Shown: positions 4,301 through 40,900, numbered from the stretch's first letter. The stretch: DNA of 64,000 nt from Asterias rubens (GCF_902459465.1 NC_047065.1:5084001-5148000); one strand, 5' to 3'. The notes: generated from the letters alone by a model not told the origin. Program-made: numbers and translations.

Positions 4301-7300
4301 GGCTCCCCCTGTTCATCGGTAAGTGTAGCCTCACTACCAGTCGTAGTTGTCCCTCTCCGTGTGTGGCATTGGGTTGTGTAGTCTCCGATACAAGCCGCAT
4401 ATTGCATGACGTGCATGATGTAGTTCTGCTCGTGCACTGAGTGAAAGAGATGCGACATGGGGCCCTTGGCGAAGATGGCAACGTCGTCCCCGGCGTGCGT
4501 TTCGCTCAGCATGGGGACGAGGGACTGCCGGGTGTACTGTGGATCTTCTGTAGAAGTGGAACATGGAAACATGGCTCTTGAAAAATAAAGCAAGCTCAAA
4601 TAATTGAAGCTGTGGGCCAAATTTCATAGGGTTGCAATAAGCAAAGAATAGTGCTTTAAGCATTTTTCTGCTGGACAAAAATGAGCAGGATACCAGTCAC
4701 AATTGTGCATGTGAAATTTTTGTTTGACTCACTGGTAAGATTATTGTGCTAAGCATAATTTGTTTGTGCTTATCTACTTGTGTGTGCTTAAGCAGCTCTA
4801 TGAAATTTGGCCCTGGTGTTGCCAGCAGTAGAGTATGGGTTCGAATCCTGATCATGACACTTTGTGCCCTTGAGCAAGGCGCTTAATAACCATAATTGCT
4901 TCGTATATAAACTAAAGGTGGGAAGGTGGTGCATTCTGCTCTACCAGCAGCCAGGCTCCTGTAGTATAGTGGATGATACATCACAAACTTGCCTAAAATG
5001 GGGGTACTCGTCCTGTAATAAAGGGGGAAAACCTGTCCCTGGTGGTAGTTGGATTTTGTCAACAGCCCAAATCAGTTAAAGGCAGTGGACACTATTGGTA
5101 ATTACTCAAAATAATTATTAGCGTAAAACCTTTCTTTGTGACGAGTAATGGGGAGAGGTTGATGGTATAAAACATTGTGAGAAATGGCTCCCTCTGAAGT
5201 GCCATAGTTTTCAAGAATGAAGTAATTTTCCACGAAGTGGGTTTCGAGACCTCAAGTTTAGAACTTGAGGTCTCGAAATCAACTATCTAAACGCACACAA
5301 CTTCGTGTGACAAGGGTATTTTTTTTCTCATTATTATCTCGCAAGTTCGATGACCGATTGAGCTCAAATTTTCACAGGTTTGTTATTTTATGCATATGTT
5401 GAGATACACCAACTGTGAAGACTAGTCTTTGACAATTACCATTAGTGTCCACTGCCTTTAAGTGTAGCCATCACATTGAAGAACACGTCTGGCCTTGTGA
5501 TCTTAGGAGATATCTCATTTAAAAAAAAAAAAAATCAAGCACATAGTGAAATGTTTATTAAAAAACATACTATATATCCTTCAAGTTTCTAACGCTTAAT
5601 TCGAAAGTAAATGTAAAACGTATATAACCATTATTTGCAAACACGTCAATCAATTTGCGCGTCATGGCAACTCGTGTTATACAATCCGACTCGGCGGCTA
5701 TGGCTCACGGCTACGACTACTGCTGGACGTCTAATAAACCTACCAGTGTCATCAGATGTGATGTCAGGTCGTTTGCCCGTTTCAGAGAATGACGACGCCA
5801 AGAGGGCAGCAGTCGGGCCATTTGCGTAGCCAAGGGTTGTGTATGGGAGCTGGTCTAGTCCCAAGTCTTTGTCATTTATTCCTGAAAACAATTAATTTAA
5901 AAAAAGTCAATTTATAGGTAAGTATTGCCTACAGGATTTGAAACTTTGCATGGTGGGAGTATAAACTATGCGGTAACACCATCTGAATTATATATTTCTG
6001 AGTAGTGTCGGTTCTAGATAGATAGATAGATAGATAAAAGGTTTATTGACAATAGCCATCACAGCATAAAAACTGAATTTCAACTATGATACAATATTTT
6101 AAAAAGATTAAAAGGACATCATTAAGAGAACAACAATTAATATACAAAAAATGTTTTATATAAAATACACAAGCAAAAAGGGGAATAAAATTAAACAGCA
6201 ACCACACACCTTTGGCAAAACACACACCACACCAGCACACACAAAAAGGAACACAAACGCATGTACACACTTGGACTAAACAAAAACAGCATTTAACAAG
6301 AACTCTGCAACACAAACAAGACCAAAAGAGCTTTATAAAACGGAGAAGAACCGGTAGTTATAAAGACTCAACGATCAGTATGCTCTTTCTCCTCCTGAAG
6401 ACAATCAGAGCACACTGATCAGACGTCTATCTATTGGTTTAATGGTTAATATAGTGAGTAGGGTAGATGGCTTTAGCTTTCGATCCAAACCGGACCTTCT
6501 TCAGAGGCAGGAAGATATTATTGGTAAATATATATATAGATACTTTAATAAAGGGCCTATATAGCATGACAAGTTCTCAAAAGAACAAGAACATAAAACT
6601 TGCTGAGCACAGAAAAGTATTGCTATTCAAACAGAAACAATTTACCAGGACTGTTTTTGCATATTATAGCAAAGACATTTGTCAAGCTGCGTTTTCTGCT
6701 AAACAGCTTTATGAAATTAAGCTCTGGTGGAGGCATCAGGTTTCTCACCTAGGATCGGATTTCCTCTGCTTGGGTAGCCGGCCATGTACATCGTGTGACT
6801 GTGATCAGATGTGACAATAATCAGTGTGTCCTGGTCGTCTGTCATCTCAATGGCCTTAGCGACAGCTTGTTCCAGGGCTAGGGATTCTGACAGGGCGAGA
6901 CCTGCGCGGGTTGTGTGATGCGCCATGTCAATTCTGCCACCTGCATGGCAACAAAATAAGTCACTTTTAAAACAAATGCGGGAAATTTTGCAGTGGTTTG
7001 CATGGTGTTCTTAATTACGGGTGGGCATAAAACCCCGCTGTATTTTCAGCAATATATTTCAAAAACGGCAGTCCAACTTTGGAAACTTTATGTTTGTATG
7101 TAATTGTTTTCAATCTAATGTAAAAGGTCTAAATGAATCCCATGATCGGGGATAATAATGTAAATTTATACGAATTGAACACGGGTTAATGTTATTGTAT
7201 AATACAAAATAAAGGGTTTGGGTACCTTTGGTAAGAAAATTTAAAAAACGAGAAAAAAAAAACGACCACAGATCTAACCTAAACAATGGTAGAAAGCTTC

Positions 7301-10300
7301 CCTTCAGAAATTACTTGACAAAGAGTTAAACAATAGAAACTGCACACAAATTATTTCAGCATGTGCAATGGATTTACGGTGCGTCTGTCCTAAAAACATT
7401 GCTCTGTGAGTTTCACCTTTTTTTATCAAAAACTTGACGACTAATGCAGCTGTGGGTAAGTTTGTTTTACAGACATCTTCACTTAAAGTGTTGGGATTCA
7501 TGTCCTGGACTAAACTTTGATCTACAAAAGGTACTAAAACCTCTTTAATGGGAAGGTACACGTTTGGTAATTGTCAAAGACCAATCTTCTCACTCGGTGT
7601 ATCCCAACATAAGCATAAAATAACAAACCTAGTGAAAAGTTTAGCTAAATTGGTCATCGAAGTTGCGAGAAAATGATGAGAGAAAAAACACCCTTGTTTG
7701 ACGAGCTTGTGTGCTTTCAGATAAGAATAAAAGACTTCTGGCTCAAAGTCTTTTAATATTTTAGTGAGGAATAACCTCTTTCTCAAAATCTATGCTACTT
7801 CAGAGGGAGCCGTTTCTCACAATGTTTATACCATCAACCTCTCCCCATTACTCGTTACCAAGTCATGTTTGTTTTAAGTAATTACCAAACGTGTATCTTC
7901 CCTTTCATTAAGCCCACTTATTTACCCTCTACAAGAAGGAAGAATCTGTCTTTCTTCCTCCGCAGTAAATTGATTGCCTTCTCAGTCATCTCAATAATGC
8001 TCGGTTCACCTTCAGGACCAGCATCTCTTAGCGCCTCGTAGTTCATGTGTTCGTAGTTAAAGAGCCCTGTAATCATAAAGTGGGATGACATTTCAAGTTT
8101 ATAACCTTTGAAAACAAAATCTACCTTACGATCATCAACATTGTCATCACACAACTGTCTCGCCAATGTTGGGCAACTTGGAGTCAATTGTCATTTTGTT
8201 CTCTGCAAGGTCCTCCATGGTGCAGGTGTTATATGCAGCAAGCCACACTGGACTTTTGACGTCACACTTCGAGGCCCGTGATCTTGCTGATATAAACGGC
8301 GACCAGGATAGCCACAGTCTGGGGTCCCTTGTCCGCACTCACAGTCTGCAACAGCTTCGGAGTACCCCCACTTCTGCATGTTCCTTTTCCTTTTTTCCAC
8401 GTCTGGGCGCAGTTTGTTAACTTAAGACTGCGCCATGTGAATAACTTAAAATGTACACACATAAATAAGTTCGTCGTGTGCCACCAGTAGGGCGGATGGC
8501 TCGGGCTACGCTATTCTTTAAGGCACAAAGTTGTCTTCCTTTGTCAGTAGCAGAATATTACCGGCTGCTTATCGTGTTGTGGGAGGTCCACCAACACCTC
8601 GGAAGTGCGGCTATGGTAGACTGGTCCCCTGTCTTTATCCGCAATTCAACTGAAGCGAAGTATTCGTTGCGAATTTGTGACGTCGAAGTTCGAATCGCAT
8701 TCACAGGAAGTATGAACCGGGCTTTGAATACTCACCGAGTATGTAGTCCGTACTGTTGGGATCGATGTTGTCGAACTGTTCCTTGTTCCAGACAAAGTCA
8801 GCCCTTCCAAGCTTAGCCCTGGCTAGCCGCCACTCGTCTATAAGATTACGACCGTCTTGTCTGATGCCTCTAAGAAGTGGATTTCCTCCGTAGTCTGTTT
8901 TGGACGTCGGCATGAAGCTTGATCGTCCTCCTCCCATAGCAACCTTTTCTCAAAAAGAAAGAGATAGAGGTGAGTAATACATTTTGTTCTTTAGAGGACT
9001 GTCAATGTCTTGCCTTACCGCGGAGTAGATTTTCGTAATTCGGGGTGACTTCCTGTCCTGCTTTTTAACCATTACCTGGGCACAAAATATAGCAAAGGAA
9101 GTCCACTGAGTCTACAACACAGAGCCATGTTGGTGTGGATGAGCTTTCGGGGTGTCCTTGTGGGGTATTTTACACAATGGAATACTGGACCCCGTTAATA
9201 TTTTAACAACATTAGCAGGACCCAATGGATCCGATTGGCTGAGTTTGTGAGGGCACACCAATTTCCAGAGTACTGTAAAGAGGACTGAAAGGGTAAAAAC
9301 ATTTTATAAAACAATTAATGGATGTGTAGGTCTACCACGTAACGGCCATAAGAATGTCCAGGGCCAAATTTTATAAAGCTGTTCAGCAGAAAATACTGCT
9401 TGACAAATCTCTTTGCTAAGCAAAATTTGAAACGGGCACCAGCCACAGCATGGAGCAACAGCAATGCAAACTTCAGGTAATTTGGGGTGGTATCCTGATT
9501 TTGATAAGCATACTTTTCTGTGTTTAGCGAGTTTTTGAGCTCAGGAGGGGATATCAACAACGAAGCAAACATAATACTCTTCTTACATCGATTTCGAAGT
9601 TTTCAAGAAACTGCAGTGCGATGTCTTTGCATCCAAAGGGCTTCTGTGCTTCGGGTATATCTAGATCTGATTGCCAATCTCTGCTTGGTGAGTTCGCATA
9701 GGCTGCAGCGGGTGTGGCGTGGGTAAGTCTTGTATTAGTGACTACACCAACGGCGAATCCTATAGCGAAAATCATGAGAGACCTATATTAAAGGCACTGG
9801 ATGGACACTATTGGTAATTACAAAGAATAATTGTTAACATTATCAACTTACTTGGTAACAAGCAGTGGGAAGCTGTTGATATGATAAAACATTGCGAGAA
9901 ACGGCTCCTTCTGAAGTAACATACAGGTTTTTTTTTTTTCGAAAAGGGTAATTTCACACTCAAATATTCATTAGAGAGGACCCCGATAGAAAAACTGATA
10001 TATTTGCGTTTTGGGGGTTACTCTTTTAATTTTCTGCAGTATTTCTATTTTGTGTTCTATTTTGGTCTATCTTGTTTCACTGTATTTTCTCATGTTGTTG
10101 TGTATGTATTTTTGGCATGTTCTTGCTGTACCTTTATCTAAATAAATTGAACAAATCAGTCAATATTATAACAGACTTCAGAAAGCACACCAAGCTACAT
10201 CTGGGGGGGGGGGGGGCACACATAATTATAGTATATCATTTGAATGATAAATATATACTTGTTACATTTGACTACTTTTTTCTTTTACAGATTGAAAAAA

Positions 10301-11084
10301 AGTATTTTGACATTACCCGCTTCTTTAGCCATCTTCACAATTGAGGGCACTTCGTGGCCCTGGGCAGAGGCGCAATCGCCCCGTATGGCTCGATCATCGA
10401 GACCAACAAGGCCTCGTTTCGTCTTGACACCAGCGAGGAAGGCTGTAGCAGTGCCTGCTGAGTCGGGAACCTGGTAATCTGTGTTGTATGTCTATTACAA
10501 GTGCATACGATAAAATGAGAGTCAGATGTACATTATGCATCTTATGTCGATATATAGGCATCCACTGCAAACAAAAATCACATACCGAGAGAGAATGAAA
10601 ATTAACATCAAAGGGTGTCAAAAAACACCATTGTATTTGTGTTGGCAGTGTTATTTTAACACCGGCACGGTGTAAATTTTGGTAAGACGACACATAACGT
10701 AGAAGTGTCGCGGCCGAGCGGTTAAAGGCACCGAATTCAAACTCTGGTGTTTCTGATAAACAGAGTGTGGGTTCGAATCCCCAGCCGTGACACTTGTGCA
10801 TGCTTTGTCCATCGGTTGGGGATGGGACGTTAAGCCGTTGGTCCAATGTGTTGTGTAACGCATGTAAAAAATAACAGTACACTTATCGAAAATAGAAGGG
10901 GTTCGCCCCGCTAATCCTGGCTGTGGCTGCTGTATGCACCGTAGCACCTTGTAAACCCTTATGAGGTGCTAAATGATATGGTCTCAGCATTCATCACTGC
11001 AATAACCTATATTTCTGAAAGTTTGTATATACTCAGCGCCTTGAGTACCTTGTTTTGTAGATACGTGCGCTTATATTATAAGAC

Positions 11085-11123
<39 letters not shown>

Positions 11124-12712
11124 ATACCTGGGTTTTGCAGGTTTTTATTATGTAGTTTATTGCATTTGGCGTTCTAACGATTCATTACCCTCGTATTGGA
11201 TATACAAATGCAATTCCATCATCCAAAAGGATTTGAAAACAAAGTCCATTCGCACCCTTAACTACCGTATGTAGACAGCATTTTAACAAAAGCGTAGGCC
11301 TATGATATAATAATAACACTTTTCATTCTACCTTTGAAAGAGCCACATGTGGGAATTCCTCATAGACTAGCGTTGACTCTTCCCCAGTCTTCCCCTCTCT
11401 CTGACCCTTGTATATCCTGGTACTCGTCACCGTTGGTATGCTCATCCCGTCCCCTAAGAACAGAATGACATTCTGTGCGATGTTCTCATTGTGTTGTGAT
11501 GCGGCATTCAGTGCTTTCTGTAACGTCTCCCTCGCCTGTTGGTTCCAATAGTCTGGCTCTGCATTTCAAATGACAATCACGGTACGTTTTGTCAGAGTGA
11601 CGTCAGGACGTCAGGACGTCCATTAGGTAAATTTGCACTAACACCTGGTGAAAGTTATTTAACAACTGACACCTGTGGCTTGAATGGATATAACTATATG
11701 ATTGCTATTTTCCAGAAACAAATTGCATTTATGGAAGCGTCGTGTGGTCGAGCGGTTAAGAGCACGACTCGCGCACTGATGTACTCTGATCAGCAAAGTA
11801 TGGGTTCGAGTCCCGGTCGTGACACTATTGTCCTTTAGCAATCGTCCTTCGGATGGGACGTAAAGCTGTGGGTCCCGTGTGTTGTTATAAAAACTGTTGG
11901 TCATCAACGCTCGTAGAATACTTCAGTATACACCCCCACCCTATCTCAAAGAGAATGGGTTCCCCCCGGTGTGTCTGGCAGTGCGACTATCTTCAATTAT
12001 GAAAGGTAGAAAGGAAGGAAAGCAAGCTAACTCCTTCCCCCTTCTTTATGTGGAGAGCCATACGCAACTTCATAGCCACACCCCCAACCGCCAACCATAC
12101 AAAATAGTATATGCTTTCGAGATAACTTGGTCGTCGACGGGCGTAATAAAATGAATTCAGACCGTCAAAACAACAGTTGAATACTGTTAAGTCACCTATT
12201 CATTTCGCAAAATGAATCTCAATGTATGGGAACCTATGCCTTAAACATGTATGTCCCGTCGCCCCTATATCATCCCTTCCCCTTGACTGAGGCGACCAGA
12301 CTACAGACATCGGTGCACCTTGGTGTGCACAGTCAGTGTCACACCCAAATGATCTGTTGCACCCACCAGTCACACTACACTTTTACGATTACATATCGAG
12401 GTATGGTACAGGATTTGTATTTGAAACACAACAGTGAAATAAATGAAGCACAATTATTTATTGCACTACCAAACAGAGACGCTGGTAACAGGTTGCTATC
12501 ACGATCATAACACATGAAATCAACTTAGTACTGAGAATACGGTGCTTTTAAACACATCGGTGTAATGCTAAAAAAAAAACCTTAATGTTATTCGTGATCC
12601 CTTGATGCAAAACTATTAAAGGAAAACAACATGTTACACCAATACCTTGTCCTGCACTCAGCATAGCTACCATCAACAACACAGAAACTATAATGCACAC
12701 TGCAGTCGCCAT
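4153..12712 (-). CDS. ALPL: Alkaline phosphatase (ALPL/TNAP-like, GPI-anchored), 9 exons, 571 aa
   Basis: Exons (minus): 12712-12646, 11558-11332, 10491-10317, 9759-9587, 8943-8736, 8066-7926, 6940-6749, 5881-5744, 4547-4153. All introns are GT-AG, phases are consistent, and the total is 1716 nt. Signal peptide [22 protein letters not shown]; motifs [19 protein letters not shown] (catalytic Ser), [30 protein letters not shown]; hydrophobic C-terminal GPI-type tail. The symbol denotes the family; vertebrate paralog orthology is unresolved. Confidence 0.95.
4614..4813. mobile_element. MITE with GGGCCCAATTTCATAGAGCTG-type TIRs (possibly PIF/Harbinger-like), family copy
   Basis: Starts gggccaaatttcatagg and ends cagctctatgaaatttggccc. 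The same termini occur at 17439-17677, 41370-41548 and 43725-43968, with partial copies near 9359, 50710, 55640-55830 and 57000-57144. The superfamily assignment is tentative. Confidence 0.7.
5080..5457. mobile_element. TTAA-flanked non-autonomous DNA transposon (Kolobok-like MITE, family 1)
   Basis: ttaa|aggcagtggacactattggtaat ... attaccattagtgtccactgcct|ttaa. TIRs are ~23 bp, the TSD is TTAA and the termini are AG...CT, the Kolobok hallmark (piggyBac starts CC). Length is 378 bp with no ORF. Confidence 0.85.
5929..6427. mobile_element. Hammerhead-motif element (copy A), split by a LINE-like 3' tail inserted at ~6016-6339
   Basis: The left part gatttgaaactttgcatggtgg...gcggtaacaccat matches copy B. 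The right part has ctcCTGAAGAcAATCAGagcacaCTGATCagacgtc (6392-6427) with a decayed GAAA. The insert is a minus-strand A-rich tail ending aataaacctttt(atct)n. Confidence 0.7.
7549..7905. mobile_element. Kolobok-like MITE family 1 (gggaaggtacacgtttggtaat TIR variant)
   Basis: ttaa tgggaaggtacacgtttggtaattgtc ... attaccaaacgtgtatcttccctt. The internal sequence is homologous to 5080-5457 in reverse orientation. Confidence 0.8.
8140..8450 (-). mobile_element. Decayed 3' end of a non-LTR retrotransposon (Vingi/Ingi-like) in ALP intron 5
   Basis: Frameshifted minus-strand peptides [10 protein letters not shown] / [21 protein letters not shown] / QTVAILV / CTMEDLAEN / AQHWRD resemble the C-terminal KWG..C.CG..QT..H..C..CT.EDLA zinc-finger end of I-group LINE ORFs. 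This was recognised from memory, with no search run. Confidence 0.55.
10701..11120 (+). mobile_element. Full-length tRNA-derived SINE with (TAT)n tail
   Basis: A-box-like gcggccgagcggtt (~10710), B-box gggttcgaatccc (~10769), a central body, and a (TAT)n tail at 11087-11120. Related copies lie at ~4825-5060, ~11738-11985, ~50915-51212 (minus) and ~62160-62290. Confidence 0.85.
11738..11985 (+). mobile_element. tRNA-derived SINE, 3'-truncated copy in ALP intron 1
   Basis: gtcgtgtggtcgagcggttaag...gggttcgagtcccggtcgtgacact...gatgggacgtaaagctg, homologous to 10701-10930. Confidence 0.8.
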
Positions 12713-14269
12713 TTTGAATGACCGAGCTTTTTGTTTTATGAGTAAACAAAATTATCTTTACATTTTCTTTCATTATCTTAATCCGGATAAACGGGGAGGT
12801 CGGGAGCGAACCATTTTGAAGATTGGATGTCCCTTGCACACTGACGTCACATCCATGCGGCCTGTGTATGTCAGAAATGTTCACTGTCCATTACGATACA
12901 AACAGGGGTACCGGCCTGACAAACTAGGTGGTTTTATTGGATGAGACCGAAGTGACGTATTTCCAACATCTATGCTATGAATGGTTAGAAGTCTTCATTG
13001 AAGCTCTCGTGCATAGTTTGCGATGTGTATGTTGGCGGAAACTGGCCAACTCATTTGGCTAATTTCTTAATACAGTTATTGCCGTGCAAGCCCAAGGGGT
13101 TCGTTTTGGCAGTCGTAGCCAAGACATGTTTTTATTTCATCTAAGCAGTGTCCAATCCAAAACATATTGGTTACGATCGCCACTAACGCACCCAGCGGTT
13201 CAACCACTTGATGAAGGCCGGTCTCTGGCGTTACTCACGAGCCCCAAAGAGTTACGTCAGACTGCGGTGTTCTATCATCCTGGCCCCAGTTTCTCTAACA
13301 GAAAATACTTTTGCCAAGCCAAGCAAAAGGTGGTTGGGGCATCTGGGGCATCTGTCGTAATAAATCGCACGCATATCGCCATTAAGCGCAAAAGTGCCCA
13401 CACCAGTGACATAACGAAAATCTAATTTTTGAAAACGGAAAAACCAAGATCGTACTTTCAGTGATGACGTCATGAGAATCTGTCTCTTAAATATTATTAT
13501 AGGATGGATACAATAATGATAGAATACATAAAAAGTTCTTGTTAGAAGGATTTCCTGCAACAAAAGGATATGAACCCAATTTCAAGCCACTATAGCATAG
13601 TACGCAAGCAATAACTCCACAATCTCATATTATGACACCAAAATGGCGGAAAGATAGACAAAACTGGTCAAAGCTTTTTGTGGCATGAAATATCTTGTGT
13701 TCAGCTTATTTTCGGGTCATAAACATACATGAAAATGTTCCCAGTAAAAAAAAAGTAAATAGTGAACTGAGCTAACGAACTAGAAAGAACTGATGTTCAA
13801 AGGGGCCGAACGGTGGTAGCTGTCTAAAAATAGAATAAAGACAGATGAAGATACTATTGTCCGCGTCCGGATGTTGAAGTTGTCGTATTTTCCCACTCTT
13901 CCTCCCTCCCATCACTGTCCCACCCTTGGGGGCATCTACCACAAAGAAACAATGGAGCACAATGGTTTAAGTCCAAATTATTTACGATGTACAACATAAG
14001 TATCGAACAATCGAAATTACCCCTAGTTTGTGAGGGATGGGATCGATCACCCACATCACAATGGCTGATAATCGACTACCTTATATCGAAATACAATACC
14101 GTGTGTGATGCTTCACCCAAATTAGTGGATGAGCTATGTTGGTCAATATTCAGCAGTGAAGAGAGTTTGTTTCTAAACATGGCAGATCAAGGCTACCAGC
14201 GGATGCTTCGGGGAAAGACCAAGATATGGAGATGAACTTGGAGATACCACTAGGGTGAGTTGACTTCGA

Positions 14270-14636
14270 CGAGAGATGTTTGGTAACTGTAAAATAAAAC
14301 AGTATTCTCACTAGGTGTATTCCAACATATGCATAGCAAAATGTGGAAATTTGGGCTCAATCGGTCATCATCGAATTTGCAAGAGTATCACAATGAAGGC
14401 AAAACACGCTTGTTGCATTACTTTGGTTGCTGTCATCGGATGCATAATAAAACGGCTGCAGAAGTATTTTATTATTTAAAATGAGAAATTACCTCTTTCT
14501 CCAAAACTACGTCACTTAAGAGGGAACCGATTTTCACAACGTCTCAAACTATCAACAGCTCTTCATCGCTCGTAATACCCCGCAAGTAAGTTTTTGAGCT
14601 AACAGTTAATTGACGTAATAACCAATAGTGTCTTAA
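14270..14636. mobile_element. Kolobok-like MITE family 1, diverged copy
   Basis: tttggtaactgt...ttctcactaggtgtattccaacat...taaccaatagtgtc. Internal homology to the family; TIR ends are degraded. Confidence 0.7.
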
Positions 14637-23783: not shown

Positions 23784-24113
23784 AACACACATCGCCGTGC
23801 GTTGAGGGCGCTGCTCAACTGTAGCTTTTGTAAGCTCTTTTCGAAACCATGGTTTGGGCTTGGGGCTTGGCTACATTATTAGTGCACTTTTCTAACTAAC
23901 GGAGCCAATGCTAAAACCCTTAGTTTCGAGAAGGGCTTACACAGTTGGCGTGTGTTTAGCGTTGTCTCCTCAGCAGTTTGTGACCGAGAGCTCAGTGCTG
24001 CCATAAGCAAAAACTCCTGGTCGTAGCCAGACAAAACATGTCGTAACATGTTCAGGGGTGCCAAATAATGATAATACCGTACAATAAAATAAACATTTGT
24101 TTGATAAGATTAG

Positions 24114-24278
24114 TTACGTAGGATTTGAAACTTTGCAAGGTGGAAATACGATATAGAAAGGTTTGCGGTAACACCATGTAAATGACTATCTTTAATGAGT
24201 TGGGGTGGTTTGAAAAGAACCGTTGGTTTCAACTCGACGTTTCGATCAGTATGCTCTGATCGTCTTCTGCAGAAAGCA
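24114..24278 (-). mobile_element. Hammerhead-motif element (copy B, most complete body; retrozyme/Penelope-type)
   Basis: Minus strand: ctgCAGAAGA-c-GATCAG-agcata-CTGATC-GAAAC-GTC-gag (24272-24233), then a ~120-nt body ending ccaccttgcaaagtttcaaatcctac. Stem II is perfect; the core reads CAGAAGA instead of CUGANGA. Confidence 0.7.
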
Positions 24279-24814
24279 GAATTAGTTACATTTTCACAGC
24301 TTGGTTTTTCGCGTGCATTACTGACAATTGTAAAACAACAAAAAACTTCATAACCGATCGAAATAAATCAATAAATAAACGATTAAATAAAAAAATGTTT
24401 ATTTTTTACTGCAAAAGGCCCTATACAAAATAAAAGCAATTGTCCTTGAATTTTTAATAATTTTGTGTTTTTCGCCATGAGTACACACTATAGCTTGCCG
24501 AAGTGTGTCAAGCATGATTGTTCCGTGGTCAAGCCAACCTGTATTATACCCTTTTGAAAAATGCACTAAAATAAATTATGTATATTCAGAAGGCGTCGGG
24601 TGTTTAAACTGGATTAAATTGCTTCAAAGGGAATTCAAAACGACACAACGCTGACTTTGTTGCTATGGTAACACAGTGATTCTCGGTGCGGTTTTTTCTC
24701 TTGGAGTGCATTAATGCATGAAAGTGTTCATAGAGTAATATACTTATTCAAGGATGGTTAAAATAACACAGCTTCCTGAGTTAAATATCGCGCGCCTTTA
24801 ATAATTAATAATAT

Positions 24815-27734: not shown

Positions 27735-27742
27735 TATATAGA
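27735..27742 (+). promoter_or_regulatory. Putative TATA box of the C-type lectin gene
   Basis: TATATAGA ~40 bp upstream of the ATG at 27780. Confidence 0.5.
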
Positions 27743-27779
27743 TCACTGCGTTTTCTCCGGTTGAAATTAGTACTCAGAA

Positions 27780-29913: not shown

Positions 29914-31099
29914 TTATTTCTGATTTTTCTGGACAGCTTGCAAAATGTGTACAAAATGGGCAATACTAAAAGGCAAGACTAGTTTGGTCTGCTTTTTTAA
30001 GGAGGAATTATTTCGACTATAATGGTAAAACAAACCAAATGGCCACGAAATAGCAAACCTACGCTGTGTTTCAAAATGGCGGACTCTACAAAAGGCGGAA
30101 AATGTCAATGGAATCGTCAACAACAAAAATGAAATACCTTGAAGCATAACAAATGAATAATGTTGATAAAATTACAAAGACCAAGTTCCTTTACTTTAAA
30201 ATAAAATGAATTTTTTTTTTTTTTTTTGGAACCTGCATTTTTGATCGATGAAGGGCAAACCTGTACGTGTTTCTTGTTATCAACCCATTTTCGCGTAGCT
30301 CTCGGAAATTGTTTCGGTCAGATATTTTCGTCAGAAACTTGCCCGTCAATATTAGTCGCCAAAAACACGCCAAGTGTGACTTAATGTCCTGAATATATTG
30401 GATTTATTAATAATTAGTCCTGTGGTTAATCCGTGTTGTTATACAGACTACAAAACGCGCTTTAAAAACACTGGGCTGATTTCACAAAGCAATAAAATTA
30501 ATCGTAAGACAAATTGTCAGTATCACCATAGTGATCTCTGTTGTGACATCACGCATTACTTAGCAACTACCATTGATATGTAGCTATTAGCATATAAAAA
30601 CTTACTTGGAAACGAGCAAAGGAGAGATGTTGATAGTATAAAACATTGTGAGGAACGGCTCCCTCTGAACATAGTTTGCGAAAAAGAGGCAATTTTTCAC
30701 TCAAACAATATTTTAAAACGTCAGCTGAAGCCTTCATTTCTTCTTGAAAGCACACAAACTTGTACTTTAGTATGTTTTTTTTTTTCGTTTATGACCCTTC
30801 TCTTGCAACTTCGATTACCAGTTGATTCCAAGTGAGAAAAACTGGTCTTTGACAATGACCAAACGTGTCCATCCCCATATCTTTAAGAAGCCTCTGTATT
30901 GTTTGATATTTCATTAAATGCAATATCTTGTAAACGAATAGGTTGCAGTGGGTTAGCCCTAGACACGCAAACGTTGCTTGTAATTAAATTGCGATCTATA
31001 AATTTGCCTTAATTCGACACGATGGGGTGTTTTATTAATGTGGTTGTCATAGGAACCGCACCCTCTTTTATGAACTGAGAGAAGGCGTATACCTGTTAA

Positions 31100-31473
31100 A
31101 GGCAGTGGACACTATTGGTAATTACTCAAAATAATTATTAGCATAAAACCTTTCTTGGTGACGAGTAATGGGGAGAGGTTAATGGTATAAAACATTGTGA
31201 GAAAAGGCTCCCTCTGAAGTGCCATAGTTTTCGAGAAAGAAGCAATTTCCCACGAATTTGATTTCGAGACCTCAGATTTAGAACTTGAGGTCTCGAAATC
31301 AACCATCTAAACGCACACAACTTCGTGTGACATGGGTGTTTTTTGTTCTTTCATTATTATCTCGCAATTACTTCAATGAGCTCAAATTTTCACAGGTTAG
31401 TTATTTTATGCATGTTGAGATACACCAACTGTGAAGGCTAGTCTTTGACAGTTACCAATAGTGTCTAATGGCT
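31100..31473. mobile_element. Kolobok-like MITE family 1, full copy
   Basis: ttaa|aggcagtggacactattggtaattactc ... ttaccaatagtgtctaatggct|ttaa. Confidence 0.88.
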
Positions 31474-32048
31474 TTAAATTAAACCTGATCAATAACTTCT
31501 CATGATGGTTTTGCAGAAATCAATATCTCGGTCTTGCCGATTATGCTCGCTGGCGATACTGAAGGTTTGATAATTACTTCCGTAACTCGTGCACTTGGTT
31601 AGGGGCTCTGAATGGTCATAGTTAGCTTGGTTTATATCAAAGGCACTGCACACTTTTGGTAATTGTCATAGGCTAGTATTCTCACTTGGTGTATCCCCAC
31701 CATACGCATAAAATGACAAAATCTAGGAATTTTGGTTCCAAAAACCAAACGTATGCTTTGCTTTTCAAAAAGGTATCACAAGTGGTCAGTTCGTGGTATG
31801 TCACATCATGCATTCTTTCAACATGACGTCTTATAAATTATTTATTTTTTATTCAATTCTAACTGCAGAAACAAGAACAGTTTTTTGAATCGACAACATT
31901 GCGCAAGACCTCAAGACATTGAACGGAGTACAATCAGTGATGTGGAAAAGGGCAGTCCGGGCAACAATTAGAACTTCAGAGACAATGAGGTTAGAGACAC
32001 ATCCACTTAGGATCATAATCGTCACCGTTTACACAAAGAGCCACTTAA

Positions 32049-32377
32049 AAGGGAAGGTACACGTACGTTTGGTTATTATTACTAAAAAAAAAATATTAAC
32101 TTAAAAACTGACTTGGTAACGAGCATTGGAGCTGAACGGCTCCCTCTGAAGTAGCATAGATTTCACTAAAATAAAAGACTTCTAGCCAGAAGTCTTTTAT
32201 TCATATCTTAAAGCACACAAATTCGTCCAACAAGGGTGTTTTTTTCTCTCATCATTTTCTCGCAACTTCGATGACCAATTTAGCTCAAATTTTGACAGGC
32301 TTATTATTTTATGCTTATGTTGGGATTACCAAGTGAGAAAACTTGTTTTTGACAATAACCAAACGTAAACCTTCCCT
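32049..32377. mobile_element. Kolobok-like MITE family 1 (gggaagg TIR variant)
   Basis: ttaa aagggaaggtacacg...tttggtt ... taaccaaacgtaaaccttccct|ttaa. Confidence 0.75.
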
Positions 32378-32489
32378 TTAAATTTTTAAAGGTTCTGACA
32401 CGCCCGCAGTATCTTTTTGAACTCATCAACCCACCCCCCCCCCAAAAAAAACAAAAAAAAAACAAAAAACAAACAAAAAACAGTCTGCT

Positions 32490-32790
32490 GTATAAAAACA
32501 TCAGGATCTCACTTGCTGGTACCTATAGAACAAGAACAATTCGTTACGAAGACCGTGCTTTTGCCAAAGCTGCTCCTGCCCTGGAGTAAGCTCCCTGTCA
32601 CTTCGTACTCGACAACTTCAAGAGGGAACTGAAGTCATACTTGCTCACTTTAGACTTACTGGGTTTTATTTAATAACCACAAGGAGTAATATCTATCACT
32701 TTCATTTTGTATGTGTTTATTTTTGTGTGTAGGCGCCTTTATCGGCTTTCTGTAGAAGTGAGCTAAAGAATTATTGTTTTTATTAGTATT
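32490..32790 (+). mobile_element. Decayed L2-type LINE 3' end
   Basis: Frameshifted LLVP..RT.RYEDRAFAKAAP..W..LP....NFKRELKSYL, followed by a 3' UTR ending gtgtaggcgcctt...aagtgagctaaagaattatt. Confidence 0.65.
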
Positions 32791-33725
32791 TATGGCCAAA
32801 CGCTTGATTGAGATTTACATTACTGTGCTTGGCTTAAAACTGCAAGTCTGCAACAACTAGGCCATGCAGTTCTCTAAGAGTGTTTAAAAGTGTAACCTCT
32901 CCTCTGACTAACTAATTTCTGTAAATAATATGTATTGGCTGCTAATTGGCATATTAATTAAATAAGTACGTGATATTATATCTAGAACTTGTATATTATA
33001 AATCTAGTGCATTGGTTGACTGTGAAAGTTTGAGCCCAATCGGTCATTGGAGGCACGATTAAATAGTGAAGAATCTAATTATATTATTTCTTTCACTGTT
33101 TTCACAATATTATAGGACCTACATCAGATCAGGTTTAATTATCGATTTCTCAAAACTGATTCTAGCAAAATTTAATGTTTCAAGTTAAGTTTTCCACGTC
33201 AGTAGACCCGACATACGGTTAAATAATGATGTGGACAACTGCGCATAAAGCTACTCATAACGCCAGTCAAAGATACGTGAAATGGTCCTTGGCTGGTAAC
33301 CATTGAGTTGTGATTAGCTACTTTTGGTGTGTGCTTAAGCAGCTCTTTGAAATCAAAGCCTTAATCTGGTAAGCATATTTTTGTTATGCTTAACTTGTTT
33401 TTGTGCTTTATAAGCAGCTCCATTTTTGGAGACTGATGGGCGATGCCATTGTATTGCTTCGACAACCGGCAATAACGAACTGTCATTGTCAAGTCAAGTG
33501 TCAACAGTCAAATTTGTGGTTAGATGAAGTATGAAAAAAACATAATCATTTGAACATTTCGGACAAAAGCACAAAACTTGTTCCATCATATGGCGGTCAT
33601 TTTGGATTTTCAAGTTGCAGCCATAGTAAGTCTTCGTGGTCCCTATTAAAAAATGTTGTCTGACTAAAGAATGGTCACATTGACTTTAAAAACCGGAATC
33701 CATGTTCTGCGAGATTGCCCATTAA

Positions 33726-34094
33726 AGATGCTATGCCAGATTTTTGGCCGATTTAACCCCAAAATTTTGATTTAAAATTCAATAGGTATTTTGATGGGGG
33801 TCGAGAAACTTACAAAAATTCATTTGAGCCATTGCTCGAAAAGGTCCGCCAATTATTAGTAGCAGTGAAATAAAGTGTTCAAAACTAGTTTTTGTCGGGA
33901 TCACGACCATATATCACGTGACCAACTCTTATGTGTTTTATAATAAACGTTTTAAATTTTTGTCAAGGTTCCTGACCATTAAAAGTAAAAGCTACACTTG
34001 TTTTCGTTAGAGCGGGTGATGCTCTTTGAAATACCATTCACTAAAAAAAATCTATTTTGTAATGTTTGGGGGCCAAAAATCTGGCACAGCATCT
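33726..34094. mobile_element. Kolobok-like MITE family 4
   Basis: ttaa|agatgctatgccagatttttggcc ... ggccaaaaatctggcacagcatct|ttaa. Confidence 0.85.
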
Positions 34095-34386
34095 TTAAAC
34101 ATCAACTTGGGTTTTGTTAGTCTATTATTATTAATCAATATTAACGAAGTTGAACTGATAGGAAAGATAGACGTTTTTTGATGGACCATTCCGATGAAGC
34201 TATTATTAATTGCGTTGCTAAATATCTTTGTGTTTACAAAAAATCAAACTGCGTGATTAGGTTTATATTAGGCAATGTTTTTATGTTGTGTTCTAAGTCA
34301 ACACAGTTATTAGTGTTTTCGTACGGCGTTTTCTGCACTAATTGTTATTTTGTACTCGGTCTAAATGGGAGGGATCTAACACTTAA

Positions 34387-34763
34387 AGGCAGTGGACACT
34401 ATTGGTAATTACTCAAAATAATTATTGGCATAAAACCTTTCTTGGTGACGAGTATGGGGAGAGGTTGATAATATAAAACATTGTGAGAAACGGCTCCCTC
34501 TGAAGTGCCATAGTTTTCGAGAAAGAAGTAATTTTCCACGAATTTGATTTCGAGACCTCAGGTTTAGAATTTGAGGTCTCGAAATCATCTAAACGCACAC
34601 AACTTCGTGTAACAAGGTAGGGTGTTTTTTCTGTCTTCATTATCTCGGAACTTCGATGACCGATTGAGCTCAAATTTTTACAGGTTTGTTATTTTATGCA
34701 TATGCTGAGATACACCAACTGTGAAGGCTAGTCTTTGACAATTACCAATAATGTCCACTGTCT
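34387..34763. mobile_element. Kolobok-like MITE family 1, full copy
   Basis: ttaa|aggcagtggacactattggtaattactc ... attaccaataatgtccactgtct|ttaa. Confidence 0.88.
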
Positions 34764-35325
34764 TTAATAAAGGATTGTAATTAGGGACCAATCATTTTCT
34801 AGATTCAACATTTTCAAATGCTTAGGTAATGGATTGGTCCCTTATTATTACAACCCTTTTGATTAACCTTAACATCCCTCTCATTATAGGGTGTATAATA
34901 CTCATGTTTACCCTCCCCAGGGTTATGAGGTTTGTTCCACTTTCAGAATATAATAAACTACACTACAGTATAATCAATATTTTATCAAGATAATTAAAAG
35001 ATTAATTTCCCCACATAACCTTGCACAGAACAAATGCTCACGTGTTGGCCTATGTCCCAATTCTCACGGTATTAAACAATGGTGGTTGCTTGTTGGCTTT
35101 TGTTCCCATGTGCGTCACAATATTAAACAGGCTGAGCGTGTTTCCCCGCTAAATTAGTTCATTTTAAACGCGGTTGTTGATAGGCCTACACCTGTTTGTA
35201 TAGACTTGCAAAACATTATGCACCAGTTTAATTTGTTTGCAATGCATGGCGCATAACCATCTAGCTATGGATTTTGTTTTGTTGTGTTCTTTATTAATTC
35301 AGATTTTGGGGGTTGAACAAAGAAT

Positions 35326-35398
35326 TGATTAGAGTGGGATTCGAACCAACGACCTCCGGATTAACGTGCCGGCGCTCTACCAACTGAGCTATCTAGCC
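35326..35398 (-). pseudogene. tRNA-like cloverleaf (73 nt, GTT at the anticodon position), probably a SINE head or tRNA pseudogene
   Basis: GGCTAGA TA GCTC AGTTGGTA GAGC G CCGGC ACGTTAA TCCGG AGGTC GTTGG TTCGAAT CCCAC TCTAATC A. Spacing is canonical and the A/B boxes are intact. However, it has A32/C33 instead of Y32/U33, mismatches in three stems and no T4 terminator. Degenerate copies lie at ~45965-46065 (minus) and ~56360-56432 (plus). Confidence 0.7.
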
Positions 35399-35569
35399 CT
35401 ATGTTGGCGGTGTTCCTTAATTAATTAATTCTGAAAAGATTTTGTTCATCCATACTTTATAACAACACGTCCGGGACGTCTATGCGCCGTACAAAATAGC
35501 ATCTGAACTACTTTTAAGTACGTTATCTAGGCACCATCTTTGCTCCATACACTATAGGGCCTACATAAT

Positions 35570-35860
35570 ATGCATCCAGGTCATGGCTGGATTTTTTCTT
35601 TTCTTTGAGAGGGCAAGGCCACTTTCCTTTGGAAAACCTAAAAGTCTATGGAAATGTTTTGAGGGGCACCAAGGCCAAGACCAAAGAAACGGAGGCCATT
35701 GACTCTACTGTGGCCACGGAATTGCCCATTATGCATCCATGTCATGGCTGAATTTTTTTTCTCTTTGAAAGGGCAAGGCCACTTTCATTTCAATCTAAAA
35801 GTCTATGGGCATGTTTTGAAGGGGCACCAATGCCAAGACCAGGGCAACGGAAGCATGCTC
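35570..35860. repeat. Two tandem ~150-160 bp copies of a dispersed repeat
   Basis: atgcatcca(g/t)gtcatggctg...agggcaaggccactttc...ggggcaccaa(g/t)gccaagacca appears twice. Related pieces lie at ~43620-43725, ~55400-55460, ~59965-60125 and ~61560-61630. Confidence 0.7.
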
Positions 35861-37940
35861 TATGCTTCATACAACATATTACTTTATGATCAAAACTCTC
35901 ACAACATTTAGATGACAAATGAGAGAGCCGTAATGGATTCACACTAAATTTGAGATGGACCAGCAAAACAAATCAGCACAAATGGATAAACTCGCAATGT
36001 TTCAAATCAAAAGATATTAAGTTTATTTATTTATCAGAATCAGGAAAGGAATATTTTTTTTTTGAAAGAAATAAATTTTTCTTAATTCAGCATTCCAAAA
36101 AACTTCTGTTCACACATCTAACACTAACCCACAAAGGCCTTTCCCTTTATAAAATGTTAATCTATAGCTACAAAAAATGATCTGACAAAATTTCATGGCG
36201 AGTATGAACAAATTATCACATAATTTTTAGCCTGAACGAAAGAATTATAAAAAGCACCATCAAGGTAGGATATCAACATTTACATGTTAATAAAATAAAA
36301 TAACATGATTGTTTCTCACTTTTTTGTTGTAAGAAAACTTACTTCATAAAAAATATCGTTAGAACTCAATTTGTCTCACCTAATGAAGAAATCAGATGAT
36401 AAAGTTTGGTGTTTTAATCACTTTGGCATAATTTTGTAGGAATCTTATATGAAAAAACCTTTTAGCACAACACTACCTCAGTGCAATTGGTAATTGCATG
36501 GGACCCACCCGAGGTCTCTCACACTAATACATATTTAATAAAATCATCATTTTTTAAATTGACTGAAAACCAATTGAAGGAGGGAAACTATATGAATAGT
36601 TTTGAAGTTAATTGATTAGTTGATGTAAATTTTAATATTTGAGTGAGAAACTACCTCTTTCTCAAACACTACGTTAGCTGTTTCTCACAATGTTTTATGC
36701 TATCACTAGCTCCTAATTGATCATTTTTATGCTGACATTATTTTGTGTAATAACCAGTAGTGTCTAGTGCCTTTAACAGAGGTGGATATTAATCAATTAT
36801 ACACATTTGTTTTATTTAAAATTTTATTTTTACATGTTTTTATATAAAGTTGCATGATCCATCACATGAAGAAGCATTTCATAATAGAATCATGAAATTT
36901 CTTCACTTCTATGGAGAGTATAAATTATCAATAATAATAAAAAAATCAGAAAACCAAAACAAAAACCTGATTCATCAATGCCCCTGAAGAATGTATTATC
37001 TTTTTACAAATAAAATTTGCTTTATTTACTTATTTTTACCCGAAAAGGTCTTTGAAAGAGTTTCACATTACAAATAATTTTTCTTTAGAAAAAAAAAAAC
37101 AATAGAGAAATTTTGGATAGCGACTACAGTATACTTGAAGTAATTATACCTCCCCCACCAAAATATATTAAAAAGAGTTGGTTAAACAGCACCGCTCCAT
37201 ACATATCTGGTTTTATTTTACTCAGTTAAATTGTTTTAATAATTATTATCTTATAAGTAAAGCTGCACTTTGCCAAAAACAAGCAATTGTAAAGTTACCA
37301 CAATGACTTTAGCACATTTGAAAATCTTTGGAATGATATCATACTACAGGACGGCTGATAAATGAATACTGCATTTAGGAAAAACTTCCCTTTACATGGT
37401 TTTTCTTTTGGCCTACCTTTCTCCTCAAAACATGTTCAAACTTCTCCCATTTTTTTTTTTACAGCGCTATAGGGCAAGCAAAAAAGAAGTTAACCCGCAA
37501 TTGGTGATGTTTTTCAAAACAAGCAAATGACACTCAAGAGTTCAGTAAGGCATCTCTTTAACAAGCACTCTCTCCTGCTTATTAGGAAGAACAAAAATGA
37601 AAGCAATTGATCATTCCTCAGAGGAGTTGTGTCTACTTTAATCAAGGTACTCATTTTGTAAGCTGTCCACAGAATACTTGACAAAACCCTTTGCTTCTTT
37701 CTCAGATGTTAAGATTCAGTCAAGCATTACCAATCCATGGACAGTTACAAACATGAGTGCTTTCAGTGAAACACGCAACTTCTCTTAGAAATGATCAATT
37801 TGTTTCATTTTTTTTTAACAGATAAGCACAAAATAATGCTTGCTTAATATGTGCTTCACTTGGGTTTTGAGTGTCAGTCTTTTTGTTTTTAAATTATAAA
37901 TCTTGGTCAACTTCATTTTGACTCACCCTGTATGACTGGT

Positions 37941-40900
37941 CTAAAACTTGCTGGCAGAAATTGACCACAGCCAAAAAGGTATCTTCAGGAAACCTGGTGT
38001 CATGGCAGCCAGCCATGGGTGCCCCGACATTTTCAAAAGTGACTTGATTTGTCGGAAGTTTAACGGATTAGAGCCATCGATGTCGGTGAAGCCGTATTCC
38101 TCGCCAAGCTCAGCAGTCAAGAGAACACGCCCAGATTTCTTCATGATGTTTTTGTCTGAATAAAAAGTAAGCAGAGATAAGTGTTCCAAGACATTAATAA
38201 CAATAATAATTAGTTTTTATTATGCACTGTTCACACCCGAAGGGTGTCTCAAAGCTTTACCGACATTATTACCCCTGGTCACTGGGCCATTTAATTCATT
38301 CCTTAAACCGTCTCAGCTCCCTGGGGAGTATACAGCCTGTGCATCAAATATAAGCTACTGAGCTAAATCAATCACAAGAACCATCTCTGCCCTCACAGGT
38401 ACCCATTTACCCCTGGTTGGAGCGAATCAATTATAGTTAAGTGTCTTGCTCAGGGACATAAGTGTCACGACCATGACTTGATTCCACACTCTGCAGAACG
38501 GAAACGCCAGAGTACTACAATAATGTAGTTCGGGGCTCTTGTCCACTTGACCATAACACGCAACAGACACCCCCATTGCGATACAAAGGATGAGGTCAAG
38601 TTGCTGCTGAGCGCATCTCGCTCGTCAGAGCAATATTCATCCAAGTAGTCTTGTGCTGTTAAAAAATCTTTCATAAAATGAATAAAAAAATTAACAAAAT
38701 CTATAACAGTCTCTAGCTATATAATTAACTTACCCTGAGCAAGACAGGCAACCGCTTTACCAGGATACTCAACCGATTCCCCAAACTGGAAGACGTCCAA
38801 CTGAAAGATAGAAAACAAAATTCTCCATAAGAATTTGTTGAATTAAAACCACAGGGAGTTAACCCTAACTCCTGGGGCATTTTGGGCTCTCTAAATCCCG
38901 GTTCATACTTCCTGCGAATGCAATATGAATTTTACGTCACACATTTGCGACAAATAATTTGCATCAGCTGAATTGTGCTCAACTCCTGCAAAACATTCGC
39001 TGAGAAGAGCCGCATGTGATGTCAAAATACGATTGCCATTCGCATTTGCAGAAAGTATGAACCAGACTTTATACTACACTTGTTAAGTATAGTATGGTAA
39101 ACGAATACGGGTGGATGCTTCACAAACGATTGGAAATCATGCACGTACAGATCATTAGGTGAGGTTTGCGGTAGCACCATGTTTAAATCTCTTTTGAGCT
39201 GTGTTTGTTAAAAAAAAAGAACCGATGACTAACAATTCAACCACTGATGACTATGCTCTGATTGTCTCTTTCGATCAGTATGCTCTGATCGTCTACTGAA
39301 GACAATCAGAGCATAATAATCGAAACGTTACGTTGTCAACCATCGGCTCTTTTCAGAACCAGAACTTCTCAAAAGAGATTTACACAAAGTGCTCCCACAA
39401 ACCTAGACTTGTTGACAAGTTGTTAAATGTCTATCGCGGTGATAGCGTTCCGACTCTTTCCCGCGATTCCCTAGGAATTCTCGCAAGACTGCTGGCTCGC
39501 GAACACTGCTGGCCCCGCGAGACTACTGCTCTCACGACTACGGTCCCATTTAACCGAGTAGAAGTCGAGCAACCAGTAGTTCGCGCAAGAGCAGTGATCT
39601 GGCGAGAGCAAAGCCACAACTCGACTATCTCACCGCGTGGGACCATTAACGACTTGTCCACAAGTCTACCACAACCTTCACCTAATAAAACTCTCATCAA
39701 GCATAGTTTCAAATCCTACTTACAAATCCGTCTGGGAAGTTGTCGGCCTTGTCCGACAATATTGTCTCCTCAAAGATTTCTGTTTTGACTGCACCAGGCC
39801 ACAATGAGATGAAAGCCACATTGCTTTTCTTCAGTTCAAAAGCACAATCAGCTGCCATACGATCACACTACAGGAAAAACAATGGAGTTAGGATAAAAAG
39901 AAGACGACAATGTTGAACATTATAATATGGTTTTACCCTGCGATGGACTGGCATCCTGTCACAGGGGGGGGGGGTAAAAATATTCTCAGTGGTTTAATGC
40001 CAATGAAACCAGAGATAAGTATTGTTTGAAACTTTGCATGGTGTGGATCGATAGGAAGAAACTATAAATAAAAAGTAATTGCTATTTTGGGGGGAGTGTT
40101 GGCTCTGAAAAGAGCCAATGTGGTCTTGACTTTTCGAACAGTACACGTATACTCTGCTCGTCTTCAGTAGACACCAGACTTTTGCATTTTTACTTTTACT
40201 GGTTGATTGGTTCTTCATCCTACAGTGATTAAAAAGTATTTCACAATTAGCGAGGCAACAAATAAAACAAAACGTACCGCTGCCTTGCCCACTCCGTAAG
40301 CCACATTAAACAAATAGTTGAGACCACCGGGCGACGAAACATTGATCATCAGCCCCTGCTTGGCTGGAACCATCATCTTGGCAGCGTACCACGAGGCGAT
40401 GTAGTGACATCTGGTTAAAGAGAAGTCATTTAAAAAAGTGAATTTCTCCACGGCTTCTCCAAAGTGCTCTAAGGGCCAGTATTGTAGCTAGACCAATATC
40501 AGTGGTGGGCTCTAAATCCAATTTAGTCCACCAAGGGCGAGCGCCTCAGCATATTATTCATATTTAGATATTGGACCATCATTGCTGAAGTGCAGTATGG
40601 GGGAAATGGCTGCACAGTGTATTTTCTCAGAGTGCAGGGCGATATTTGTTAGTTCCTGGCACCACCCACCGTTGCTCCAACACTGTTAAGGGACTTGTCA
40701 CACGAGGCAACTTTTTCAGGCAACCAACTGCAATGCATAATAATAATAAATAATAATAATAAGACTTGTAATGCGCACATATCCACCCTGCTGGGTGTTC
40801 AAGGCGCAGTAAAACCAAAAACAAAACAAAAAACAAAAACACAACACAAAGAAAAACAGAAACAACAAAATAGTCATTGAAAACCTGTGACATAAGATAA

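Follow-up and report, generated by a model that had tools for sequence, protein, structure and literature searches.

Probable Penelope-type origin of a short non-coding repeat joining a hammerhead motif to a histone-type stem-loop in the Asterias rubens genome

Minimal type I hammerhead motifs are known and numerous in the Penelope-like elements (PLEs) of metazoans, and their purpose is still debated. Their description (Cervera & de la Pena 2014, PMC4209133) gives four traits that lie outside the search descriptor: a base intervenes between positions 9 and 10.1, G10.1 pairs with C11.1, 15.2-16.2 is palindromic, and the consensus families show compensatory changes. It also gives a long helix II, a helix I of 4-5 bp, and opposite-strand pairs spaced 100-700 bp apart. 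Metazoan retrozymes of 170-400 nt are thought to be derived from the pseudo-long terminal repeats (pLTRs) of PLEs (PMC7229834; 10.64898/2026.07.22.740005). In vitro, catalytic mutations of the hammerhead left PLE insertion unaffected, and among public RNA-seq reads none started or ended at the cleavage site (PMC11167929). Here we analyzed a 64,000-nt window of Asterias rubens (GCF_902459465.1 NC_047065.1:5084001-5148000), in which an earlier note had described four loci as one dispersed, hammerhead-bearing repeat family, and searched the 417.6-Mb assembly of 150 contigs in which the window is C4:5084001-5148000. We found that the four loci are dead copies of a short non-coding retroposon family. 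The best explanation as a whole, to which we gave a probability of about 0.78, is that they are dead copies of a PLE-type retroposon that carries a hammerhead and a histone hairpin and was mobilized in trans.

The window held two full-length copies, B (24118-24280, minus strand) and D (40016-40178, minus strand). With copy B as query, at least 1,630 candidates were found at first look, and all 40 of the scored copies were 95-97% identical; copy D returned 1,673 candidates at 72-88% identity. Judged by these identities, the family holds one young and one older subfamily, and the majority sequence of each was taken from an alignment of 30 young and 39 older copies. The older majority head read UCUC-CUGAAGA-C-GAGCAG-AGUAUA-CUGUUC-GAAA-CG-UC-GAGA, and the young majority head read CUC-CAGAAGA-C-GAUCAG-AGCAUA-CUGAUC-GAAA-CG-UC-GAG. 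A degenerate 31-mer spanning both heads had 1,071 exact matches in the genome against 0 for its reversed control, a count far beyond chance. Among the first 100 of these matches, the box and helix II were combined as A4 with GAUCAG in 72, U4 with GAGCAG in 24, U4 with GAUCAG in 4, and A4 with GAGCAG in 0, the U4A change being confined to the young helix II type. Exact-match counts understate the older copies, because these are heavily decayed, and the family probably numbers on the order of ten thousand copies.

The unit was non-coding and ~160-170 nt long, with a further 35-90 nt at the 5' end in occasional copies, and was built of four modules: a minimal type I hammerhead of the PLE kind at the 5' end; a histone-type stem-loop ~11-18 nt past the GUC, followed by a conserved AGAGAU box; a variable middle; and a conserved 3' end of ~30 nt. 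When natural young and older copies were aligned pairwise, the hammerhead, the hairpin region and the 3' terminal box were each ~90% identical, and the middle between these conserved blocks was ~55-60% identical with indels.

In the head, CUGAAGA and one unpaired base preceded a 6-bp helix II, after which came GAAA, helix III as the palindrome ACGU, and a GUC site; helix I measured 3-5 bp. CUGAAGA was the majority box of the older subfamily (at least 27 of 39 copies) and was present in 28 of the first 100 genome matches. The young subfamily departed from the CUGANGA box, with CAGAAGA in 29 of 30 copies and in the 72 matches counted above. Both majorities carried GAAA-CG-UC-GAG(A), which supplies the GAAA box, A15.1/U16.1, an NUH triplet and the helix I complement; GUU variants of the cleavage triplet were consistent with CpG decay. 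The base between A9 and 10.1 was unpaired in every parsed copy (C, or U in some), the G10.1-C11.1 pair (columns 39/70) was GC in 54, GU in 6 and other in 15, and 15.2-16.2 was the palindrome ACGU in both subfamily majorities. Since helix III is only this palindrome, action as a dimer is implied. As read from its sequence, the older majority has all the traits of metazoan PLE minimal hammerheads given in PMC4209133.

Pairing was found in 88.8% of cells over 80 copies, as compared to 27-46% when the partners were slid. Pair 3 of helix II had changed on both sides (UA 38, GU 34, CG 1, GC 1 in the 80 copies), and helix II occurred as GAGCAG/CUGUUC, GAUCAG/CUGAUC and GACUAG/CUAGUC. Judged from the aligned copies, older master copies maintained a canonical hammerhead core with compensatory changes in helix II. 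A natural older head folded into helices I and II at -11.3 kcal/mol versus -6.7 +/- 2.5 for shuffles, and the monomer fold also yielded a separate histone hairpin. RNAcofold of two heads gave a trivial extended duplex, uninformative on a dimeric hammerhead. A third hammerhead variant, GUCUC-CUGACGA-U-GACUAG..CUAGUC-GAAA-CG-UU-GAGA, was observed at locus L014 (2743-2837, plus strand); no histone hairpin followed it, and it may head a different element family.

That the resemblance to a hammerhead is a chance feature of a hairpin-containing repeat is scarcely credible. Such a reading would fit the lack of an Rfam hammerhead match and of a cleavage signal, and the young majority without U4. However, the head combines all the boxes and their spacing with the bulged base, G10.1-C11.1, a palindromic helix III and a helix I complement, and this combination is retained between subfamilies whose mid-unit sequences differ by ~40-45%. 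Moreover, a second, unrelated PLE of the genome has the same architecture in a different sequence.

Profile searches built from the 30 young and 39 older copies matched exactly the four places in the window that the earlier note had assigned to one family, and the body motifs it had listed as shared were present there. Copy B is a full-length member of the young subfamily (nhmmer E=1.6e-56), flanked by a 9-bp target-site duplication, ATTAGTTAC, at 24109-24117 and 24281-24289, which was read in the sequence and matched by script as 9 bp at the boundaries of L001. Its hammerhead-like head (24233-24275, minus strand), read and parsed, has a CAGAAGA box (U4A), a C-to-G change in helix I and helix II GAUCAG/CUGAUC, then GAAA-CG-UC-GAG. 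Its histone-type stem-loop (24207-24221, minus strand), GGUUCU UUUC A-AACC, has a 1-nt deletion in the 3' arm and scored 21.6 bits (E=6.5e-4) with Rfam RF00032. Copy D is a full-length member of the older subfamily (nhmmer E=2.8e-40; 72-88% identity to genomic relatives). Its hammerhead (40123-40172, minus strand), likewise read and parsed, has intact CUGAAGA, GAAA and GUC, helix II GAGCAG/CUGUUC and a 6-nt insert in loop II; its defects are a decayed, non-palindromic helix III (AAGU) and an A.A mismatch at positions 1.1/2.1. The histone-type stem-loop of copy D (40101-40116, minus strand), GGCUCU UUUC AGAGCC, is perfect (24.7 bits, E=2.5e-4). A G13 run lies upstream of copy D at 39960-39972.

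The other two copies are broken. Copy A has a 3' part at 5932-6020 (minus strand; family positions ~69-166, young-subfamily profile E=9e-10) and a 5' part at 6342-6404 (minus strand; positions 9-74), the head of which is truncated within helix II; an A/C-rich insert of ~320 bp (6021-6341) separates the halves, and a (GATA)n microsatellite lies at the break (6013-6035). An inverted head fragment of 39 nt (6389-6427, plus strand; positions 10-49) abuts copy A and reads CUGAAGA-C-AAUCAG..CUGAUC, then AGAC, a decayed GAAAC, then GUC. Copy C is a head-to-head inverted pair. The left, inverted arm (39159-39267, minus strand; positions 20-129) has a partly duplicated head and an A-run that destroys the stem-loop. 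The right arm (39289-39404, plus strand; E=3e-16) has a head at 39296-39329 reading CUGAAGA-C-AAUCAG..AUAAUC-GAAA-CG-UU and a stem-loop at 39345-39360 (plus strand; RF00032 18.5 bits). Copies A and C represent the rare intermediate with U4 and a GAUCAG-type helix II, which became AAUCAG after CpG decay. CUGAAGA is present in the window in copies A (inverted fragment), C and D.

These readings altered parts of the earlier description. The helix II sequences given for B and D were found as stated, as were the additional C behind A9 and the arrangement of ACGU and GUC. Copy B does not carry CUGAAGA; it reads CUGCAGAAGA, that is, the young CAGAAGA box with the C-to-G change in helix I. The CUGAAGA given for copy A does occur, but in the short inverted head fragment instead of the main copy, and with GAAAC decayed to AGAC. 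Because copy B reads CAGAAGA and the CUGAAGA of copy A sits in an inverted fragment, the 'A/B consensus' with CUGAAGA was a reconstruction; the true young majority has A in place of U4 (29 of 30 copies; 72 of the first 100 genome matches). Activity had been expected in the family consensus or in copies elsewhere, and the older majority does have a complete core, but the majority of the youngest subfamily is mutated (U4A). The motif gttcttttcag, listed as part of the body, is present, but it is a histone-type stem-loop, which had not been recognized.

The manner of insertion pointed to PLE enzymes. Target duplications of 8-13 bp lay directly at the ends of 9 of the 30 young copies, versus 2.5% of mismatched flank pairs, and no poly(A) or microsatellite tail was found on the young copies aligned. 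An inverted partial copy abutted the head at 13-14 of the 30 young loci, including most of the young copies without a target duplication; window copies A and C carry such inverted head partials too. Complete head-to-head junctions numbered 38 young and 4 older genome-wide. Head-to-tail junctions numbered 0 young and 3 older, all 3 with one linker and two of them in the array at L033, and partial tandems were seen at L033, L007 and L025. PLE insertions are described as leaving, as their signature, an inverted, 5'-truncated copy beside the 5' end, and heavy 5' truncation is normal for these elements (PMC8557442). The inverted head partials and the junction census therefore supported mobilization by PLE enzymes and argued against a retrozyme tandem array. 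After transcription or read-through, the element would be copied in trans at new sites by a PLE reverse transcriptase (RT) and GIY-YIG endonuclease (EN), and such copying would leave variable target duplications and a frequent inverted head partial. The proposal of a non-autonomous Penelope-type hammerhead retroelement, defective in every window copy, held up on the complete minimal hammerhead of the older majority with its PMC4209133 traits, on the target duplications and on the inverted head-to-head partials.

The label 'retrozyme' in the earlier note fared differently. As a metazoan retrozyme, the family would arise from head-to-tail repeats giving multimers, from which the hammerhead cuts units that circularize and reinsert. 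A unit of ~170 nt with a type I hammerhead fits PMC7229834, one three-unit tandem array exists (L033), and the preprint 10.64898/2026.07.22.740005 links animal retrozymes to PLE pLTRs. Nevertheless, head-to-tail arrays were almost absent, given the junction counts above, and the copies have fixed ends, bordered by target duplications, that lie elsewhere than at the GUC cleavage site. Furthermore, no unit-length back-joint was among the best-supported RNA joints, no reads ended at the GUC, and the motif is of the loop-less minimal type rather than a canonical hammerhead with loop-loop contacts. We consider a retrozyme very improbable.

An equally improbable origin is a SINE-like element mobilized by a LINE, which captured a PLE hammerhead and a histone 3' end as its head. 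The discrete ends and variable target duplications would suit it, and a LINE could have supplied the conserved 3' terminal box as a tail. However, head-to-head duplications with the same head region in both arms are a PLE signature and not LINE twin-priming, and a poly(A) or microsatellite tail is absent. No pol III A/B boxes were seen by eye, and there was no tRNA, 5S or 7SL Rfam match. The sole apparent link to a tRNA-like sequence, a 3' tail shared with a tRNA-derived SINE at L075:3725-3985, was rejected, since the tRNA-like stretch runs on the opposite strand and the supposed tail is simply a family copy truncated at its 5' end. The tRNA-like sequence itself (L075:3725-3808, minus strand; tRNA-Sec model 27.1 bits, below the cut-off) is probably the head of a tRNA-derived SINE, and it adjoins the 5'-truncated copy of the hammerhead family.

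More weight, though still on the unlikely side, was given to the possibility that the copies are what extreme 5' truncation leaves of the tail of a rare autonomous PLE (solo pLTR-like ends), one that has the hammerhead and histone hairpin in its 3' region. The truncation usual for PLEs (PMC8557442) would produce such tails. The 5' ends of the young copies varied by a few nt (GTCCAGC.., GC.., C.., TCTCC), and a minority of copies (L006, L024, L028, L043, L051, L057, L030 and L003) had 35-90 nt more upstream in common, ending in ..ACUUAAGC..GUCCAGC just before helix I. Since a subset shares this extension, the full unit may be ~200-250 nt, with the ~160-nt form representing a favored 5' end. On the other hand, most 5' ends of the 30 young copies fell within ~10 nt, upstream of helix I, and the shared upstream sequence stopped by ~90 nt in the longest copies, without coding similarity. 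No RT/EN open reading frame (ORF) lay upstream of any sampled copy, and the sampled GIY-YIG loci were without such a tail.

Canonical PLEs with RT and GIY-YIG do exist in the genome, as the search for a partner showed, but among those sampled none was found that shares the head, hairpin or tail. One young canonical family, examined at L073-L075 (C2:24066000-24075999, C4:12486500-12494500 and C17:2434000-2443999), had at least 12 copies with an intact 921-aa ORF (RT plus C-terminal GIY-YIG), occurred as partial tandems ~4.4 kb apart, and was 96-97% identical between loci. It carries its own hammerhead, GCCU-CUGAAGA-A-GGUCC..GGAUC-GAAA-GC-UA-AGGC, 45 nt from the 3' end, with the palindrome AGCU. 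As a sequence-sharing partner this PLE was rejected, blastn, a hairpin regex and tblastn having found no common head, hairpin or tail. Two of its tail fragments lie in the window: a 61-nt 3' fragment at 6449-6509 (minus strand; blastn 93% to L074 unit 3952-4012), which has its own minimal hammerhead, and a fragment at 48899-49085 (plus strand; blastn 93% over 188 nt) with the decayed box CUUAAGA. No histone hairpin was found in 15 sampled GIY-YIG/PLE loci. A comparison by eye of the hammerhead and hairpin places with the GIY-YIG places showed none lying up to 2 kb downstream in the same orientation.

Of the Rfam families, RF00032, the histone 3' stem-loop, alone gave a signal in the copies, reaching 28.7 bits (E=8e-7) in the natural copy L035; scores of the window copies were 18.5-24.7 bits, against a gathering threshold of 34 bits. 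The stem-loop started ~11 nt after the GUC in the older type (GGCUCU-UUUC-AGAGCC) and ~18 nt after it in the young type (GGUUCU-UUUC-AGAACC). Pair 3 of the stem was compensated from C-G to U-A (UA 36, CG 35), and 93.7% of cells were paired over 80 copies. The AGAGAU box was conserved ~12 nt past the stem in both subfamilies and would lie roughly at the position of the histone downstream element. A 20-mer of the exact hairpin plus ACCA occurred 275 times in the genome, several times directly after hammerhead matches. One RF00032 match above the cut-off (C2:2633239-2633284, 38.9 bits) lay ~30 nt from a hammerhead match on the opposite strand; by its coordinates, it would be the hairpin of an inverted partner copy. 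One flank-specific pattern for the hairpin of the host's own histone genes had 0 matches in the genome, and a looser pattern matched mostly copies of the element. A cluster of RF00032 matches at C14:12417145-12431367 (40-42 bits, alternating strands) is probably a true histone gene cluster, judging by scores and positions.

Full-text literature searches found no description of a hammerhead or PLE paired with a histone stem-loop. This kind of hammerhead is known; its pairing with the hairpin seems undescribed. A tentative idea, which we regard as possible rather than probable, is that the hammerhead, the histone stem-loop and the AGAGAU box form one functional RNA module, in which a PLE lineage copied the host histone-mRNA end signal to recruit SLBP (stem-loop binding protein), and perhaps the U7 machinery. 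If so, a non-polyadenylated element RNA would gain stability, export, S-phase timing or a defined end, and the hammerhead would be kept beside the hairpin even where cleavage was lost. This would be a previously undescribed exploitation of a host RNA-processing pathway by a retroelement. Binding of SLBP by the hairpin would mean that the retroelement borrows the histone mRNA pathway, and would open a concrete approach to the cellular role of the element RNA.

Three raw RNA-seq runs and one metatranscriptome were mapped on a young copy with its flanks. Read depth over the element was 2,000-3,400, as compared to ~0 in the flanks; the two read orientations were equal, and 87-91% of the reads ran into flanks unlike the mapped locus. 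At the hairpin, a possible 3'-end processing site, depth was flat across and beyond, with no pile-up of read ends. The joints supported in RNA comprised inverted head-to-head forms as well as a partial duplication of the tail, with no unit-length back-joints among the best supported. As the reads continue into unlike flanks and do not end, the element was seen as a passenger of many longer transcripts and not as a processed small RNA. Element sequence was also found in seawater and marine metatranscriptomes. A neighboring repeat (L002:1902-2000) had an RNA depth of ~4,000 per orientation and sharp boundaries at 1906-1909 and 1941.

Changes of U4, in the uridine turn of the hammerhead core, strongly reduce cleavage. 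From such general hammerhead mutagenesis, the young U4A majority should cleave poorly. The youngest and most uniform wave, of copies 95-97% identical, spread with the U4A core, and we therefore infer that self-cleavage is dispensable for mobility. The hammerhead would act at best weakly, as a dimer or with the help of protein. The RNA picture obtained here agrees with that in PMC11167929.

Several observations weigh against a non-coding PLE-type retroposon mobilized in trans. No known PLE step explains the clustering of most 5' ends a few nt upstream of helix I. Among the elements sampled, no autonomous one was found to have the head, the hairpin or the 3' end in common with the family, and none of ~120 copies (320 kb sampled) was adjoined by an RT ORF in the right orientation. 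The covariation is real, with compensatory changes in helix II between subfamilies, and rests on two or three independent events. The Rfam hammerhead models matched nothing in the window at the gathering score, and at E<=10 they also failed to match copies B, C and D and a canonical natural copy; this null is uninformative for minimal PLE hammerheads because the models require helix III. The three RNA-seq runs showed neither a pile-up of read starts or ends nor a depth step at the GUC. For older canonical copies RNA-seq is a weak test of cleavage, since the reads were mostly U4A, there was no 5'-OH selection, and the older copies are too diverged to pool.

Apart from the repeat family, the window contains an intact-looking tRNA-Asn (GUU) gene at 35326-35398 (minus strand; Rfam tRNA 51.5 bits), with which ARAGORN concurs.

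The stem-loop of the family resembles that of histone mRNA 3' ends (RF00032) in its 6-bp stem, GGCUCU/AGAGCC or the compensated GGUUCU/AGAACC, its UUUC loop, its C/A-rich 5' flank, its 3' flank of AACA, ACCCC or ACCA, and the purine-rich AGAGAU box ~12 nt downstream. In contrast to histone mRNA, the hairpin here is internal to a retroposon, scores below the 34-bit cut-off in the window copies, and showed no 3' ends or depth step in RNA-seq. A conserved and compensated histone-type hairpin directly after a ribozyme is an unusual feature of the family. As a dispersed, short, non-coding retroposon with a type I hammerhead, the family also resembles Sm-alpha of Schistosoma mansoni; as summarized in PMC6155905, however, the Sm-alpha hammerhead is canonical and efficiently cleaving, with loop-loop contacts, and no histone stem-loop accompanies it.

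With metazoan non-LTR retrozymes (Cervera & de la Pena 2020, PMC7229834; Li et al. 2026, 10.64898/2026.07.22.740005) the family has in common that both are small, non-autonomous hammerhead repeats of marine invertebrates. Retrozymes form head-to-tail arrays, give linear and circular RNAs of unit length, and mostly carry canonical hammerheads, whereas the family described here is dispersed, with target duplications and head-to-head pairs, almost no tandem junctions, and no signal of circular or unit-length RNA.

The closest match is to the metazoan PLE minimal hammerheads of PMC4209133. Both are of type I, with CUGANGA and GAAA boxes, the unpaired base at 9/10.1 and G10.1-C11.1, a long helix II (6 bp), a helix I of 3-5 bp lacking a defined loop 1, and a palindromic helix III, which is ACGU here. 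Both also occur as thousands of dispersed copies in consensus families, with pairs on opposite strands ~100 bp apart. The family offers a natural experiment on the purpose of such hammerheads, and U4A in its most recent and most uniform wave supports the finding of PMC11167929 that cleavage is not needed for Penelope-type insertion. It differs from the described motifs in that these lie near the 3' end of an ORF-bearing element, whereas here the motif stands at the head of a non-coding unit of ~160 nt, precedes a histone-type stem-loop, and carries U4A in the youngest subfamily.

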